Position numbers and translations under genes: made by a program | Shown here: positions 19,080-63,928 of the stretch, one piece after another | How positions within the stretch are numbered: the stretch's first letter is position 1 | Layout: the number at the start of each line of letters is the position of its first letter | The notes under the pieces: generated by a model | What the model saw: the letters and a program-made list of their open reading frames with translations, nothing else | What the model was told of the DNA's origin: nothing | Database searches by the model: none | From: Macrostomum lignano | Taxonomy: Eukaryota | Assembly: GCA_002269645.1 (NCBI GenBank) | Contig: NIVC01002603.1 | Span: 1-64,000, forward strand | Reading direction: 5' to 3' | Length of the DNA stretch: 64,000 bases

Positions 19080-20280
19080 GCGATCTCTATCCTCTCCCTC
19101 TCTCTGTCCACTCCCTCCCTCTACCCTCTCCCTCTCTCTATCCTCTCCCTCTCTCTGTCCACTCCCTCCCTCTACCCTCTCTCCCTCTCTATCCTCTCCC
19201 TCTCTCTGTCCACTCCCTCCCTCTACCCTCTCCCTCTCTCTATCCTCTCTCCCTCTCTATCCTCTCCCTCTCTCTGTCCACTCCCTCCCTCTACCCTCTC
19301 CCTCTCTCTATCGTCTCCCTCTCTCTATCCTCTCTCCCTCTCTATCCTCTCCCTCTCTCTGTCCACTCCCTCCCTCTACCCTCTCCCTCTCTCTATCGTC
19401 TCCCTCCCTCTACCCTCTCCCTCCCTCTACCCTCTCCCTCTCTCTATCGTCTCCCTCTCTATCCTCTCTCCCTCTCTATCCTCTCCCTCTCTATCCTCTC
19501 CCTCTCTCTGTCCACTCCCTATCTATCCTCTCTCCCTCTCTATCCTCTCCCTCTCTATCCTCTCCCTCTCTCTATCCTCTCTCCCTCTCTATCCTCTCCC
19601 TCTCTCTGTCCACTCCCTCCCTCTACCCTCTCCCTCTCTCTATCGTCTCCCTCCCTCTACCCTCTCCCTCTCTCTATCGTCTCCCTCTCTCTATCCTCTC
19701 TCCCTCTCTATCCTCTCCCTCTCTCTGTCCACTCCCTCCCTCTACCCTCTCCCTCTCTCTATCGTCTCCCTCTCTATCCTCTCTCCCTCTCTATCCTCTC
19801 CCTCTCTATCCTCTCCCTCTCTCTGTCCACTCCCTATCTATCCTCTCTCCCTCTCTATCCTCTCCCTCTCTATCCTCTCCCTCTCTCTATCCTCTCTCCC
19901 TCTCTATCCTCTCACTCTCTCTGTCCACTCCCTCCCTCTACCCTCTCCCTCTCTCTATCGTCTCCCTCCCTCTACCCTCTCCCTCTCTCTATCGTCTCCC
20001 TCTCTATCCTCTCTCCCTCTCTATCCTCTCCCTCTCTCTGTCCACTCCCTCCCTCTACCCTCTCCCTCTCTCTATCGTCTCCCTCTCTATCCTCTCTCCC
20101 TCTCTATCCTCTCCCTCTCTATCCTCTCCCTCTCTCTGTCCACTCCCTATCTATCCTCTCTCCCTCTCTATCCTCTCCCTCTCTATCCTCTCCCTCTCTA
20201 TCCTCTCCCTCTCTCTATCCTCTCTCCCCCTCTCTATCCTCTCCCTCTCTCTATCGTCCCCCTCTCTATCTCTGCCTCCC
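19080..20280. repeat. CT-rich compound minisatellite
   Basis: Blocks of CTCTCTATCCTCTCCC / GTCCACTCCCTCCCTCTACC. Confidence 0.95.
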
Positions 20281-55494: not shown

Positions 55495-55666
55495 TTTTGT
55501 CTGACATTTGTCCTACTTAGGGCTCATACATACCTGTGTTACCGCCCGTCTCTATTTCACGTAATCAATCAAGAATCCATAACAATCCAATGGAGTCCAA
55601 TAGTCGCTAATGACCAGCTACTATCTGAAAGCAAGGACTCAAATCTCCTGTTGCCAGATATTCAAT
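55495..55666 (+). repeat. ~170-bp dispersed repeat, inverted partner of 59231-59402
   Basis: About 8 mismatches against the reverse complement of the partner. Confidence 0.92.
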
Positions 55667-57118: not shown

Positions 57119-59454
57119 TCACGATGTCGAATGATGCATTCTGCGCTGCCCGTGCCCTGGGAACGGCAGCAGAGCCTCGGTTGCTGCGTCAGCCTCGTCA
57201 ACTCCTTCGGATTCTTCAACAACCTGCATCGTCCTTGGCTGCTGATGCCTCGGCTGCAGCTGCTGCTGCTGCTGTTGTTGCAGTTGTCGACGTTCCAACT
57301 GGTTCAACAGGCCAAGCTCTGCGCGTAGATCGGCGCTTTCATCCCGGTGAAGTCCACCCGAGTAGTCAAATATGGGTCGGATTGGCAGGCCAGCGTAGTC
57401 TATGGTGTGCTGTTGCTGCTGCTGCGGGCGGAAGTTATTTGACGGCCGGGGCAACCTTGGCGGTGGATGAGCACCGTTGGTGCTGACGCTGTCTGGCAGG
57501 CGGTGCAGCTCCATCTGCTGCGACTGTTTCGGCTGCTGACTCTCCTGACGCTGCGGTTCAATTTTTAAAGTCTCAGCCGGAGTTTCAGTCATGGTTGCAA
57601 CGTCTGTCAGAGTTGCCGTGCCGTTGCTGGGGTACTGAGTTTCCTGGAAGTTAATAGTAAATATTTTGTTTTCTTCTGTTTATGCATTGGCGTTTTGAAG
57701 CAATGTACATGGGTAGAGAGAAGACGGGGTAGTTCCCAGTTCACTCAGCTATGATTTGTTGGCACAAGACCTACAGGGGTAGAGAGGTAATGGGTGAATG
57801 GGATGGTGCTCAGTTCACTCAGTTATCATTGGTTGACTTAGACCATACTACATTGGGGTAGAGAGGGAATGGGGGTAGCGCTCAGTTCACTCAGTTATCA
57901 TTGGTTGACTTAGACCATACTGCATTGGGGTAGAGAGGGAATGGGGATGGCGCTCAGTTCACTCAGTTATCATTGGTTGACTTAGACCATACTGAATTGG
58001 GGTAGAGAGGGAATGGGGGTGGCGCTCAGTTCACTCAGTTATCATTGGTTGACTTAGACCATACTGCATTGGGGTAGAGAGGGAATGGGGATGGCGCTCA
58101 GTTCACTCAGTTATCATTGGTTGACTTAGACCATACTGCATTGGGGTAGAGAGGGAATGGGGATGGCGCTCAGTTCACTCAGCTATCATTGGTCGGTACT
58201 AGATCCTTACTCGTACTTTGCTTGCTACTACGAGCGTACATGTATATGTTTAGTACACAACACTACACGAAAGTTCCCCTAAAATGGGCAAAGCAAGCAT
58301 AGCTATATAAAAAAATGCTCAAAAAGTGACATACCACATTGTCGCACCTAGATGACAGTCGAGACCTTCTTAGTCGCCTGTCCAATCTTCGACGCCTGAA
58401 GTTTGAGAATTCAGTTTTACTGTGAAGCTTTCTCAATTTTATTGCTATAGAACCATATAATAAGAATAGAAAATACAATGGTACAATAGTTTAGCGAATC
58501 CGACACAGAAACGGAATATTAAATTAGCAACAATCGCTACTGCAAGTAGAGTGCAAAGCTGATTTTACAACATAAAAACTCACTATAGACAACACCCACT
58601 TACACTTTGTAAAGCATCAGACAGACGGACAGCAATACAATAGCTAGGACGGCAAAGACCGCCACGAACACAACACCAAGGGCGGCGGAGGAAATGGGCG
58701 CGGCTACCGCTGCCTGGCTCTGGTAAACTGCGGCGCCTTCTGAAATACATGTAACAACACGATAATTGAAGGCATAAAAAATAAATAATTACTAGGTGCA
58801 AGCTATACTATAAATATTTTTAGTACACTACTAATAGTAAGCGAATATGCGCTTGAACGTAAAACTTGACGCACGACATTGAAATTCTAAATAAGGTTAA
58901 GATCGAATTAAGAGACACAGCAATTTGGTGAGCATTATATACGGCTACAAACCTGGCAAGGTACCAGGCCAACAAGAAAAGGGCACCAATTACGCAACAG
59001 GCTGTGCCTATGGCAACGCTAGTCAGCAGTCTGTCTGTTTGTCGCACTGACCGGCTTGACAAGTACGCTGTCGTATAAAATCAATGATATGGCTGAGTTT
59101 GGAACAATTAAATAGGTCAAGTCTGCTTTAATAACCTTTCTTTCATTTTTGATTAGTGCAAAACTAATAATTTATCATACGTCCATTATTCTTTCTAATG
59201 CTCCTTCTACTGTCTATCTATCTATGATAGATTGAATATCTGGCAACAGGAGATTTGAGTCCTTGCTTTCAGATAGCAGCTGGTCATTAGCGACTATTGG
59301 ACTCCATTGGATTGTTATGGATTCTTGATTGGATACGTGAAATAGAGACGGGCGGTAACATAGGTGTGTATGAGCCCTGGGTAGGATAAATGTCAGACAA
59401 AAGAAGGCTGCTATCTATCTATCCATCTATTTATCTATCTATCTATCCATCTAT

Positions 59455-59522
<68 letters not shown>

Positions 59523-62500
59523 ATATCTATCTATCTATCTATCTATCTATGCAGACAGTCGATGTTATCTAATGTCATCTAATGTTCTCTAATTTTATTT
59601 AAAATCTTCTAATCTCATTCAATGTTTTCTAATGTCATCTAAGGTTCTCTAACATTTTAATGATTTCTAATGTCATCTACTGTTTTCTATTGTCATTTAG
59701 TGTCATCTAAATAAATCAAACGGTTCTGACCATCCCCGTATTACTTAAGAACTCTGCGCAGTCACGAGGAGTGGCAGCGGTTGAGCCGTTAGCGGTGTCA
59801 GGCAAGCATCTGCAAGGCGCGCAGGTTGTGACAGATCTGTGTTAGTTTTCCTGTACTCGGTTAGCAAGCTGTCAAGTTAGAGAGGCAGACAGAGTTATTT
59901 TAAGAGCAAAAATTAGCATTCAGGTGATAAATATTAGTTTTAGAATGGCAGTTTCTTTCTTTCTGCTCAGAGCGGACTGGGCGGGTACCTTGATAATCAA
60001 ACTTTTCGCACAAAGTTCCCGTGTAAAATGCTGGGCAGCTGAAAGTTTGGTAAAAATATTTTTAATGATGTTGAACTCTGAACATGCGTGCTATTCAATA
60101 CCTGCTTAGCTTATACCTGTTTGGTATCCTTGAAATTGATCTTTGGGATCTTTGCCTTGGATTGTTGGGATCTTTGCAATGGATTGTTGGGATCTTTGCC
60201 TTGGATTGTTGGGATCTTTGCCTTGGATTGTTTTTATCTTTGCATTGGATTGTTGGGATCTTTGCCTTGGATTGTTGGGATCTTTGCAATGGATTGTTGG
60301 GATCTTTGCCTTGGATTGTTTTTATCTTTGCCTTGGATTGTTGGGATCTTTGTTTTGGATTGTTGGGATCTTTGTTTTAGATTGTTGGGATCTTTTCAAT
60401 AGATTGTTGGGATTTTTGCCTTGGATTGTTGGGATCTTTTCCTTGGATTGTTGGGATCTTTGCCTTGGATTGTTGGGATCTTTGCCTTGGATTGTTGGGA
60501 TCTTTGCCTTGGATTGTTGGGATCTTTGCCTTGGATTGTTGGGATCTTTGCCTTGGATTGTTGGGATTTTTGCCTTGGATTGTTGGGATCTTTGCCTTGG
60601 ATTGTTGGGATCTTTGTTTTGGATTGTTGGGATCTTTTCCTTGGATTGTTGGGATCTTTGCCTTGGATTGTTGGGATCTTTGTTTTGGATTGTTGGGATC
60701 TTTTCAATAGATTGTTGGGATCTTTGCCTTGGATTGTTGGGATCTTTTCCTTGGATTGTTGGGATCTTTGCCTTGGATTGTTGGGATCTTTGCCTTGGAT
60801 TGTTGGGATCTTTGCCTTGGATTGTTGGGATCTTTGCCTTGGATTGTTGGGATCTTTGCCTTGGATTGTTGGGATCTTTGCCTTGGATTGTCACCTGTAC
60901 TTACATGCACACCTGCTTCTCGGTCAGTTGGTCCACAGTGCAGGTGCCGCCGTGCAGACACTTGGTGGAACTGTCACACACCAGTCTTCGGGTGGGCTCG
61001 CGCTGGACCGCGGGCTCGACTGCGGATGGTGTCGGAATGGCGGTGTGGGAATGGCGGTGTGGGAATGGCGGTGTGGGAATGGTGGTGTGGGAATGGGGGT
61101 TTGGGAATGGCAGTGTGGGAATGGCAGTGTGGGAATGGCATGATGTCGATTTGAGGACACTAGCTACGAAGGTGAGGAACAGCAACCCGGACTCACCCTT
61201 CAACACGATGCTGCTGGCGGCTGAGCCGTTCAGATTGCGGAACACGCAGGTGTAGTTGCCCGCCGAATCGCTGTAGTTTTTCAGCGTCAGGCGGGTCATC
61301 ACGGTGCCGGACCTGCGCGGTTGTGCGGTTCGATACGATGGACTGACAGCTCATGTAAACTTTTCTCGGCCTCCCCATCAAGATTCCAACATCCCGATCA
61401 AAATTCCAAAATCCCCATCAAAATTCCAACATCCCAGTCAAGATTCCAACATCCCAATTAAGATTCCAACATCCCAATCAAGATTTCAACATTCCAATCA
61501 AGATTCAAACATCCCAATCAAGATTCCAACATCCCAATCAAGATTCCAACATCCCAATAAAGATTCCAACATCCCAATTAAGATTTTAACATTCCAATCA
61601 AGATTCAAACATCCCAATCAAAATTCCAACATCCCAATCAAGATTCCAACATCCCAATAAAGATTCCAACATCCCAATTAAGATTTTAACATTCCAATCA
61701 AGATTCAAACATCCCAATCAAAATTCCAACATCCCAATCAAGATTCCAACATTCCAATCAAAATTCCAACATCCTAATTAAAATTCCAACATCCCAATCA
61801 AGATTCCAACATTCCAATCAAAATTCCAACATCCTAATTAAAATTCCAATATCCCAATCAAGATCCCAACATTCCAATAAAAATTCCAACATCCCCATTA
61901 AGATCCTAACATCCCAATCAAGATCCCAACATCTCCATCAAGATCCCAGCACCCTTATTACGATGGCCGTATCCTTAAAGATCTTAACATCCTCATAAAG
62001 CTTCTATCCTTATAAATTTTTGAGCACACGCTTTAGGTATATTAATGTGCTCAAACATCCAAGAAGCCCCGCCCAGTGGACTCACTTAGTCCGAAACTGA
62101 GCCACGCAGTCTTTCGTCTGCTGCACCTCGACTCCGTCCTTCAGCCAGTGCGGCCGCGGCATCGGCTGCCCCCGCGCTGAGCAGAGCAGCCTGCGGCGAC
62201 CGCCGGAGCCTCCGCGAAGACGAGCCTCCTGAGTGACTTCGGGCGCTTCGGCTGGAATGAAAAATCGAGAATTAAGTTGAGAGTCCAATGTTTGTCCAAT
62301 TTTGTGGGATTGGGATTTGTGTGGGATTTGTGTGGGGTTTGTGTTGGATTGGTGTGGAATTGGTGTGGGATTTGTGTGAGATTGGTGTGGGATTTGTGTG
62401 GGGATTTGTGTGGGATTTGTGTGGAATTGGTGTGGGATTTGTGAGTGATTTGTGTGGGATTGGTGTGGAATTGGTGTGGGATTTGTGTGGGATTTGTGTG

Positions 62501-63928
62501 GGATTTGTGTGGGATTTGTGTGGGATTGGTGTGGAATTGGTGTGGGATTTGTGAGTGATTTGTGTGGGATTGGTGTGGAATTGGTGTGGGATTTGTGTGG
62601 GATTTGTGTGGGATTGGTGTGGAATTGGTGTGGGATTTGTGAGTGATTTGTGTGAGATTGGTGTGGGATTTGTATGGGATTGGTGTGGGATTTGTGAGTG
62701 ATTTGTGTGGGATTGGTGTGGGATTTGTATGGGATTGGTGTGGGATTTGTATGGGATTGGTGTGAGATTTGTGTGGGATTTGTGAGTGATTTGTGTGGGA
62801 TTGGTGTGGGATTTGTATGGGATTGGTGTGGGATTTGTATGGGATTGGTGTGGGATTTGTGTGGGATTTGTGAGTGATTTGTGTGGGATTGGTGTGGGAT
62901 TTGATTGGGATTGGTGTGGGATTTGTGTGGGATTTGTGTGGGATTTGTGTGGGATTTAAATTAGTAGTGTTGTGGGTTTTAACAGTGGAGGTGTTGAAAT
63001 GGGAACGAAATGGTTTTCGTGTGGGAACAGTGTGGTAATGGTGTGTACGATGTGGTAATGGTGTGTACGGTGTGGTAATGGTGTGTACGGTGTGGTAATG
63101 GTGTGTACGGTGTGGTAATGGTGTGTACGGTGTGGTAATGGTGTGTACGGTGTGGTAATGGTGTGTACGGTGTGGTAATGGTGTGTACGGTGTGGTATGG
63201 TATGACAACTTTTGTAAGTCTAGATACAGTTTTTTTGCACTAAAATTAGCGGTAAATGTGGTCAATATGACGTTTTTAACGTAAGCGATATAAACATCAG
63301 TAAGCATATTGTTAATTCTGCATTAAACAATAACTCAACACGAGTCCATGGCAATAAATATTTCCCCCAAGCCTCGTAGAAGACGGGACAGTGCTAATGA
63401 GAAACATCTGGGGCCGATTTCATAAAAAAGCTAGCCATAAGCCGTAAGCTGCTGCTCGTTAAGCTGCAACTTTCAGCAGTTGTTAAAAGAAGCGTTTTAT
63501 AAACGATTGCTAAAAAGCCGTGCTAAAACACTATCATGTCCCTGCTGCCTCAACGGCTTTTACCATAGACATCAAGCTGTGGCTTGATAGCTATGCGTTT
63601 ATGAAACCCAGTCATGGAAAAGCAGTCAATCGGCCCCGGGCCGATTTCATAAAATACAGCTAACGGCTTTTTAGCTGCGGCTTTGACTGTCGAATTGCTG
63701 TCGAATTGTCTGATTGTGAGAATCAGTGGCAGTTAAAAGTAGGCAATATCAGTTTCTACATTAGTTAGAGAGCTTAGGCTAAATAACGTAGGAGCTTAGG
63801 AGTACATGCTGACTGCATCAACGATTTGCTTTGATCTTACCGCAGATTTTGTTATCTTCTATCACTACAGAGTCAGGCCGAGAGGCTGGCGGATGGAGCA
63901 GCCACCCTGCCAATGCGGATTGTGTGAC
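57119..63928 (-). CDS. Neuregulin/Vein-like EGFR ligand (Ig + EGF + TM + Q-rich cytoplasmic tail), 5' end outside the window
   Basis: Exons 63928-63841 (tentative), 62251-62086 and 61312-61197 (Ig: LLCSARGQPMPRPHWLKDG...GNYTCVF), 61019-60905 (EGF C1-C4), alternative 60038-59989 or 59809-59745, alternative 59067-58953 or 58739-58604, then 58395-58335 (basic stop-transfer) and 57643-57119. All phases are compatible. Confidence 0.85.
57710..58200. repeat. 72-bp minisatellite in the last intron of the neuregulin-like gene
   Basis: GGGGTAGAGAGGG at 57855, 57927, 57999... Confidence 0.92.
58604..58739 (-). CDS. Alternative stalk+TM exon b
   Basis: TTTCAG|AA...GT|GTAAGT, 136 nt, phase 1-2; GAAVYQSQAAVAAPISSAALGVVFVAVFAVLAIVLLSVCLMLYK. 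Confidence 0.85.
58953..59067 (-). CDS. Alternative stalk+TM exon a
   Basis: GACAG|CG...AG|GTTTGT, 115 nt, phase 1-2; YLSSRSVRQTDRLLTSVAIGTACCVIGALFLLAWYLAR. Confidence 0.75.
59231..59402 (-). repeat. ~170-bp dispersed repeat (inverted partner of 55495-55666), adjacent to (TCTA)n at 59410-59550
   Basis: Direct comparison. Confidence 0.92.
59745..59809 (-). CDS. Alternative EGF C5-C6 exon 2 (long loop)
   Basis: TTGCAG|A...A|GTAATA, 65 nt, phase 2-1; CLPDTANGSTAATPRDCAEFL. Confidence 0.65.
59989..60038 (-). CDS. Alternative EGF C5-C6 exon 1 (canonical)
   Basis: CTTTCAG|C...AAG|GTACCC, 50 nt, phase 2-1; CPAFYTGTLCEKFDYQ. Confidence 0.85.
60130..60890. repeat. 22-bp minisatellite (GGATTGTTGGGATCTTTGCCTT)n
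   Basis: Read directly. Confidence 0.97.
61030..61140. repeat. 14-bp repeat (CGGTGTGGGAATGG)n
   Basis: Read directly. Confidence 0.9.
61375..61950. repeat. 20-bp minisatellite (AAGATTCCAACATCCCAATC)n
   Basis: Read directly. Confidence 0.95.
62305..63200. repeat. GTGGGATT(T/G)-type repeat followed by (GTGTGGTAATGGTGTGTACG)n
   Basis: Read directly; intronic. Confidence 0.93.
63411..63610. mobile_element. Possible small MITE
   Basis: GGGCCGATTTCATAAA ... TTTATGAAACCC imperfect inverted ends; a second left end at ~63637. Confidence 0.4.

Follow-up and report, generated by a model that had tools for sequence, protein, structure and literature searches.

The neuregulin NRG1 is a classic case of alternative EGF halves and of variation in the stalk. 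Neuregulins also share a conserved transmembrane (TM) helix, for whose conservation gamma-secretase cleavage, back-signalling and dimerisation are candidate reasons, and to our knowledge none has been described with a second, unrelated TM exon beside the conserved one. Mutually exclusive TM exons occur in Drosophila Dscam1 (17.1 and 17.2) and N-cadherin (ME-18a and ME-18b) (PMC2655722). The present study examined a stretch of 64,000 nucleotides (nt) of the flatworm Macrostomum lignano (contig NIVC01002603.1, assembly GCA_002269645.1), called the window below. Its minus strand carries a gene, Mlig015540, which is assigned by sequence to the neuregulin-type (NRG-type) EGFR ligands; exon coordinates are window positions. 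The gene holds two exons, a and b, each encoding a stalk and a TM helix. Homology identifies exon a as the ancestral, pan-bilaterian neuregulin TM exon rather than a chance reading frame, and the two exons are probably both used, as alternatives.

The gene is already published. Its protein, PAA56579.1 (BOX15_Mlig015540g1, 561 aa), appears in a supplement as 'Macrostomum lignano NRG', taken from transcriptome SRX1343824 (Barberan et al. 2016, PMC4914847). The known isoform is that in which the canonical second half of the EGF domain (EGF2) is combined with exon b, and the product assembled here from these two exons is 100% identical to PAA56579.1. A candidate alternative second half, EGF2alt, lies between EGF2 and exon a.

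Two stalk and transmembrane exons and their ancestry

The elements on which the argument turns are the following:

58953-59067, minus strand: exon a, stalk plus TM, assigned to the ancestral neuregulin type, 115 nt
58740-58952, minus strand: intron separating exon a from exon b, 213 nt, AT-rich
58604-58739, minus strand: exon b, Ala-rich stalk plus TM, 136 nt
58335-58395, minus strand: shared basic stop-transfer exon, (R/V)RRRLDRRLRRSRLSSRCDNV, in-frame partner of either a or b

Exons a (115 nt) and b (136 nt) both have a length of 3n+1, phase 1 in and phase 2 out, and each encodes a stalk and one hydrophobic helix, which confirms on the minus strand what a first-pass annotation, made from the sequence alone, had proposed for these positions. 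With exon boundaries marked by ^, exon a has the acceptor ...tatacgacag^CG, the donor CAG^gtttgt and the peptide (A/T)YLSSRSVRQTDRLLTSVAIGTACCVIGALFLLAWYLA(R); exon b has ...gtatttcag^AA, AGT^gtaagt and (E/K)GAAVYQSQAAVAAPISSAALGVVFVAVFAVLAIVLLSVCLMLYK(V). The peptides had been called unrelated, and they share no detectable similarity, their Smith-Waterman score being 22 against 21.5 ± 4.1 for shuffles (z = 0.1). Kyte-Doolittle maxima over 19 residues reach 2.25 in exon a and 3.25 in exon b; the stretches free of charged residues are 25 and 43 residues long, respectively, and RRRLDRRLRR follows next. Pfam scans of the two TM segments returned generic TM noise and nothing else.

The stalks differ in character. 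Exon a has a short, basic stalk in which an RxxR motif (RSVR) sits just outside the helix; the a-type stalk of the M. lignano paralog Mlig001833 likewise shows a minimal RxxR (RVNR; 19577-19691 of its locus, L004), and mollusc and annelid stalks read ..AKLLHDR and ..AEKDR where the a-type M. lignano stalks show RxxR. The stalk of exon b is rich in Ala, Val and Ser, and its helix starts with the helix-destabilising PISSAALG.

The first-pass annotation had treated exon a as the doubtful member of the pair. Comparison with relatives reverses this: homologues of exon a serve as TM exons in a paralog and in other phyla, and exon b appears as the newcomer. The paralog Mlig001833 (PAA72948.1 / A0A1I8IZT6) has a sole TM exon (L004 19577-19691), with the 115 nt and the phases of exon a; 17 of 37 whole codons are identical (46%), and the Smith-Waterman score is 87 against 20.9 ± 4.4 for shuffles (z = 15). 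The exons of that locus follow the order EGF1, canonical EGF2, EGF2alt, a-type TM, stop-transfer (RRRLDQLKFKK) and tail, and no b-like exon was found in it. An older model of this paralog, A0A1I8IZT6, reads ..CV^CLIVSNETAENCVEFQT^YVDRRVNRAIDRVLTATTIGVAATVIIGIVVLSWYLAR, the EGF2alt homologue being followed by the exon a homologue.

Similarity extends to other phyla. Exon a matches the TM of the Owenia fusiformis NRG (locus L005) with z = 8 and 13 of 29 anchored identities, where 2.7 are expected, and the TMs of polyclad NRG-2 (z = 8.1), amphioxus (6.5), the nemertean Lineus (6.3) and human NRG1 (3.4), whereas exon b scores z about 0 against the same polyclad, amphioxus, Lineus and human set. 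In Owenia the TM is encoded by a single exon of 103 nt, entered in phase 1 and left in phase 2; the TM exon of mouse Nrg1 has the same length, 103 bp (PMC4437646). The 3' boundary is common to exon a (..WYLA^R) and Owenia (..YFLA^R), an Arg codon being split after its second base; the exon ends read GCC AG^G in exon a, GCT CG^G in Owenia and GCC AG^A in the paralog. The conserved NRG helix pattern [KD]R..T..GI....[AS][YW][YFC] is present in exon a, and the a-type helix is kept as a unit with an Arg-rich stop-transfer segment in the paralog and in other phyla.

Constraint on exon a was assessed exon by exon against Mlig001833. Amino-acid identity is 46% for E1, 30% for Ig1, 45% for Ig2, 44% for EGF1 and 46% for exon a, and pN/pS is lowest for exon a (0.56). 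For practically the entire time since the paralogs diverged, exon a has therefore been under the same degree of constraint as the constitutive exons.

Exon b is matched at 100% in PAA56579.1 and five other deposited models, and its use is verified at the RNA level by the transcriptome-derived sequence (SRX1343824, PMC4914847). By its sequence it is a lineage-specific newcomer, unrelated to exon a. Over the region from the N-terminus to EGF1, the Mlig015540 protein and its sister paralog, P0007 (A0A1I8HAW4), are 49% identical, and either is 41-42% identical to Mlig001833. Between exon b and the P0007 TM, z is 3, with 8 of 29 anchored identities (p = 0.03). If this weak homology is real, exon b appears to be old, having arisen before the split between Mlig015540 and P0007.

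Splicing of the locus and competing explanations

Either exon can be joined in frame to the RRRLDRRLRR exon (58335-58395), and the frame is lost when both are included, as the first-pass annotation had noted, or when neither is. Since both are 3n+1, a full-length precursor with the conserved tail needs exactly one of them. An mRNA with both is frame-shifted, with a stop 13 nt ahead of the last exon junction, and encodes a TM-anchored product with an unrelated basic tail of 60 residues; the mRNA that skips both ('..FDYQGVEDWTGD*') has its stop 35 nt ahead of that junction. The 50-55-nt rule for nonsense-mediated decay is established for mammals, and with stops at 13 and 35 nt from the last junction such decay is no obvious enforcer of exclusivity. 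The frame-shifted mRNAs could possibly yield tail-less forms, either anchored or soluble, of the immunoglobulin (Ig)-EGF ligand.

An anchor-swapping splice choice is likely to be real. In the mechanism proposed here, a and b would act as two alternative cassette exons, placed after the EGF exons and ahead of the basic stop-transfer exon; by position, phase and sequence, exon a is the orthologue of the one TM exon found in the NRGs of annelids, molluscs, polyclads, amphioxus and human. Default splicing in the whole animal would take exon b, with its strong splice sites, while exon a would still be spliced, probably in an isoform that is rare or confined to certain tissues, and may be coupled to EGF2alt, as in the paralog model. 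Regulated inclusion of a with skipping of b would give a precursor with the conserved NRG helix and the short basic RSVR stalk, and the choice may alter stalk cleavage or intramembrane processing. We infer mutual exclusivity, four isoforms and free combination of EGF halves with TM exons; of the 2x2 splice code envisaged by the first-pass annotation, what is supported is that both TM exons are genuine coding exons and that a full-length protein takes one of them at a time, and no deposited model of this gene contains exon a or EGF2alt.

Several observations count against the alternative use of a and b. Exon a and EGF2alt are absent from all six members of the protein cluster and from the published transcriptome sequence, and exact look-ups of ten constructed isoforms (with a or EGF2alt, in three copies and two older model styles) found none deposited. 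A word-index search with the junction peptide from EGF2 through exon a to the stop-transfer segment gave no match, and it missed PAA56579.1 too and is thus uninformative. The paralog model that joins EGF2alt to an a-type exon, A0A1I8IZT6, ends by read-through of the a-type donor (..WYLAR, AGG TAA) and may be a prediction rather than a cDNA. The splice signals of exon a are weaker than those of b (donor gtttgt, modest pyrimidine tract), which fits a regulated minor exon no better than one in decay. The homology of b to the P0007 TM, from which its age is judged, is weak (p 0.01-0.03). Finally, the three homeologous copies of the gene (L001-L003) differ in 1.4% of intron columns (about 98.6% identical), with one synonymous difference in exon a and three differences in exon b, and at this low divergence they have no power to reveal current selection on exon a.

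A rival explanation is that exon a is a recently retired relic, the gene having switched to b and no disabling mutation having yet occurred. All deposited models of this gene and the published transcriptome sequence use b only, the splice sites of a are the weaker ones, and the homeologs have no power to reveal ongoing selection, the three copies together being expected, by our estimate, to have gained only about 0.8 disabling events. We nevertheless regard a relic as unlikely. Exon a is conserved relative to the paralog like the constitutive exons, with the lowest pN/pS, which leaves room for only a very brief neutral period when set against the divergence of the paralogs. Its frame, its AG and GT signals and its exon-like G+C are kept in all three homeologs. 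If b is indeed shared with P0007 and older than that split, exon a has long stayed intact beside it; such coexistence, in so far as the weak similarity can be trusted, would be hard to explain unless a is used.

A further explanation is that a is used together with b, or that both are skipped, so that the switch would lie between tail and no tail, or between anchored and soluble products. The stops 13 and 35 nt before the last junction leave, by the mammalian rule, no obvious decay of such mRNAs, and the paralog does have a soluble form, its canonical EGF2 running into TAG. Conservation of the a-type helix and the stop-transfer segment as a unit, in the paralog and in other phyla, points the other way, no such transcripts are deposited, and this account seems improbable.

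Evidence from the window itself bears on whether exon a is an exon at all. A scan of both strands found about 10 non-repeat, open, TM-like segments of 3n+1 length between AG and GT per 128 kb, which gives a chance expectation of about 0.1 per intron of this size when splice-site quality is ignored. Exon a has a G+C content of 54% against 30-35% in its flanks, and its codon-usage score lies within the top 1.2% of intronic windows, a signal that comes via G+C, its own frame not being the best of the three. It is single-copy in the window, and a repeat origin found no support there, the one repeat close to it being a 172-bp sequence that flanks a microsatellite. The scan, G+C, codon score and uniqueness are suggestive only, and homology to relatives is decisive. 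However many phase-compatible TM-like segments chance provides, a fortuitous hydrophobic intronic open reading frame flanked by AG and GT is refuted by the homology of exon a to paralog, annelid, polyclad, amphioxus, nemertean and human TM exons or regions, and by exon boundaries identical to those of the homologous TM exons.

If a and b do alternate, the consequence might lie in how the ligand is released. The Ala/Val/Ser-rich stalk of b and its PISSAALG start resemble ADAM17- and rhomboid-type substrates, as known from TGF-alpha and Spitz, and on this analogy the a/b choice might, speculatively, change the releasing protease or the intramembrane cleavage. A fuller version, in which the gene toggles between a conserved and an unrelated stalk and TM, combined with two EGF halves, and so routes the ligand to different release or intramembrane-cleavage machineries, is put forward only tentatively. 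The routes could be, for example, convertase or ADAM plus gamma-secretase on one side and rhomboid-like or ADAM17-like cleavage on the other, and forward signalling would be separated from back-signalling by the tail.

The 3' end of exon a (UGGCCUGGUACCUUG, 58957-58971) is complementary at 13 of 15 positions to the EGF2 donor region CAAG^GUACCCGCCCA (59978-59992). A search for competing RNA structures gave 12 short inverted repeats in 1.8 kb, which is noise level, and the complementarity, one of 12 of similar quality, is probably due to chance.

The alternative EGF half and the surrounding gene

The remaining exons in the window are as follows:

62086-62251, minus strand: Ig I-set domain, first exon
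61197-61312, minus strand: Ig I-set domain, second exon
60905-61019, minus strand: EGF first half (C1-C4), ending in phase 2 directly behind C4, as in Owenia
59989-60038, minus strand: canonical EGF second half, CPAFYTGTLCEKFDYQ, phase 2 in and phase 1 out, in all deposited models
59745-59809, minus strand: candidate alternative EGF second half, CLPDTANGSTAATPRDCAEFL, with phases matching the canonical half
57119-57643, minus strand: last coding exon, with the Q-rich cytoplasmic tail and the stop codon

Exon 1, with the signal peptide and N-terminal domain, lies outside the window, past its end. The protein follows the order N-terminal NRG domain, Ig I-set, EGF, single-pass TM and cytoplasmic tail. 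In PAA56579.1, Pfam places the I-set domain at residues 188-267, N-terminal to EGF, with 35.1 bits against a cut-off of 23.7; EGF scores 15.5 bits, under its cut-off of 21.5, and NRG2_N matches weakly (E 0.0055, under cut-off). The EGF domain has the spacing C-x5-C-x5-C-x10-C-x-C-x8-C with a Y-T-G motif, and none of its six cysteines varies when it is aligned with mollusc and annelid NRGs. A HMMER (phmmer) search of 1.84 billion representative proteins matched residues ~37-426 in a single stretch to proteins of Patella, Haliotis and Dreissena (E 4e-21 to 8e-19), which carry the NCBI name pro-neuregulin-1, membrane-bound isoform; the Owenia fusiformis NRG was likewise matched full-length in a single stretch. 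A literature search by gene identifiers returned no papers.

PAA56579.1 is accompanied by two near-identical homeologous copies (g2 and g3) and three older UniProt/UniParc models. The near-identical copies are accounted for by the hidden polyploidy of M. lignano, which has undergone a recent whole-genome duplication (PMC10468722). Two of the older models, of 495 aa, end in ..STNG^CPGRQI(T/A)SARSSSNSTP; this end corresponds to the loss of a 19-nt GT..AG stretch, gtgctcatccaccgccaag, in the tail exon at ~57470-57490 (minus strand), explained either by a spurious micro-intron introduced when the models were built or by an indel between assemblies.

EGF2alt (59745-59809) encodes a C5-x15-C6 loop and an N-glycosylation sequon, and lacks G-x-R-C. 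Its homologue in Mlig001833, CLIVSNETAENCVEFQ (L004 16856-16905), lies at the equivalent position and is used in A0A1I8IZT6. The two are similar at p about 0.01, with the common pattern CL..N-x-S/T..C-[AV]-E-F and C5-C6 loops of 15 residues in the window and 10 in the paralog, and EGF2alt is identical in the three homeologs. Its conservation thus identifies EGF2alt as a real exon, which bears out the second EGF exon proposed by the first-pass annotation, and a deposited paralog model joins it to an a-type TM exon. The EGF2alt isoform may bind its receptor differently or not at all. When both EGF halves are included, a stop falls at the last EGF2alt codon. In the paralog, canonical EGF2 (L004 16201-16257) lacks a donor and reads on into TAG (..CEKIDIY*), which makes the annotated 353-aa protein a soluble Ig-EGF ligand; the TM exon can be reached only via the alternative EGF exon.

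Owenia also has two alternative exons for the second half of EGF, with the intron right behind Cys4, and the X1 and X2 isoforms of molluscs (Patella, Haliotis, Gigantopelta, Dreissena) differ in this half, so that an alternative EGF half is an old feature. The alpha/beta pattern at the post-Cys4 intron is thus not confined to vertebrates but extends to annelids, molluscs and flatworms.

A (GATA)n microsatellite in the intron between EGF2alt and exon a (59403-59553) spans ~150 nt in the window copy, several hundred nt in copy g3 and ~2.5 kb in g2 (L002/L003 introns), and its length is the largest difference between homeologs in this region. A 172-bp repeat occurs at 59231-59402 and, inverted and 95% identical, at 55495-55666; it adjoins tetranucleotide microsatellites, (GATA)n and (CAGA)n, and looks like a microsatellite-associated repeat family. 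Long tandem arrays with units of ~20-60 nt are present in all the larger introns of the gene (57760-58190, 60143-60894, 61370-61960 and 62320-63220) and produce long spurious open reading frames on both strands.

Comparison with known systems

Neuregulins of animals as distant as flatworms and humans have a TM helix in common, and here one gene keeps this helix and offers an unrelated replacement for it in the same precursor. The gene is thus a natural test, at the level of isoforms, of what the conserved helix does, and would amount to a TM swap, in a species in which RNAi and transgenesis work. The published picture is corrected in that the anchor of the sole M. lignano NRG isoform described so far is the non-conserved one, and neither the ancestral TM exon nor the alternative EGF half-exon appears in the annotation. 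The gene published earlier (PMC4914847) is the same as that analysed here; a single isoform was described, and exon a and EGF2alt were not.

Vertebrate NRG1/2 and their lophotrochozoan orthologues share with Mlig015540 the order of N-terminal domain, Ig, EGF, TM and tail, and the intron after EGF Cys4 followed by two alternative second-half exons (alpha/beta). The 103-nt TM exons of mouse and Owenia are 3n+1, like exon a. These genes differ in having one TM exon, whereas M. lignano adds the unrelated b between a and the stop-transfer exon, and the EGF2alt of M. lignano has a non-canonical C5-C6 loop of 15 residues and lacks G-x-R-C.

Within M. lignano, the paralog Mlig001833 resembles Mlig015540 in exon order, in the length and phases of its a-type TM exon and in its alternative EGF half-exon. 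It differs in having no b exon and in a canonical EGF2 that ends in a stop, giving the soluble form.

The swap of a whole TM segment, part of what the first-pass annotation had named its best candidate for an undescribed system in the window, has precedents in Dscam1 exon 17 and N-cadherin ME-18 (PMC2655722). There, as proposed here, a type I protein takes its only TM from one or the other of two adjacent exons. In Dscam1 and N-cadherin the two exons are similar in length and can be recognised as tandem duplicates, and the proteins are adhesion and recognition receptors, whereas exons a and b of M. lignano are unrelated (z = 0.1), differ in length (115 nt against 136 nt) and are part of a growth-factor precursor, in which a is the conserved neuregulin anchor and would still be in use beside the newer b.

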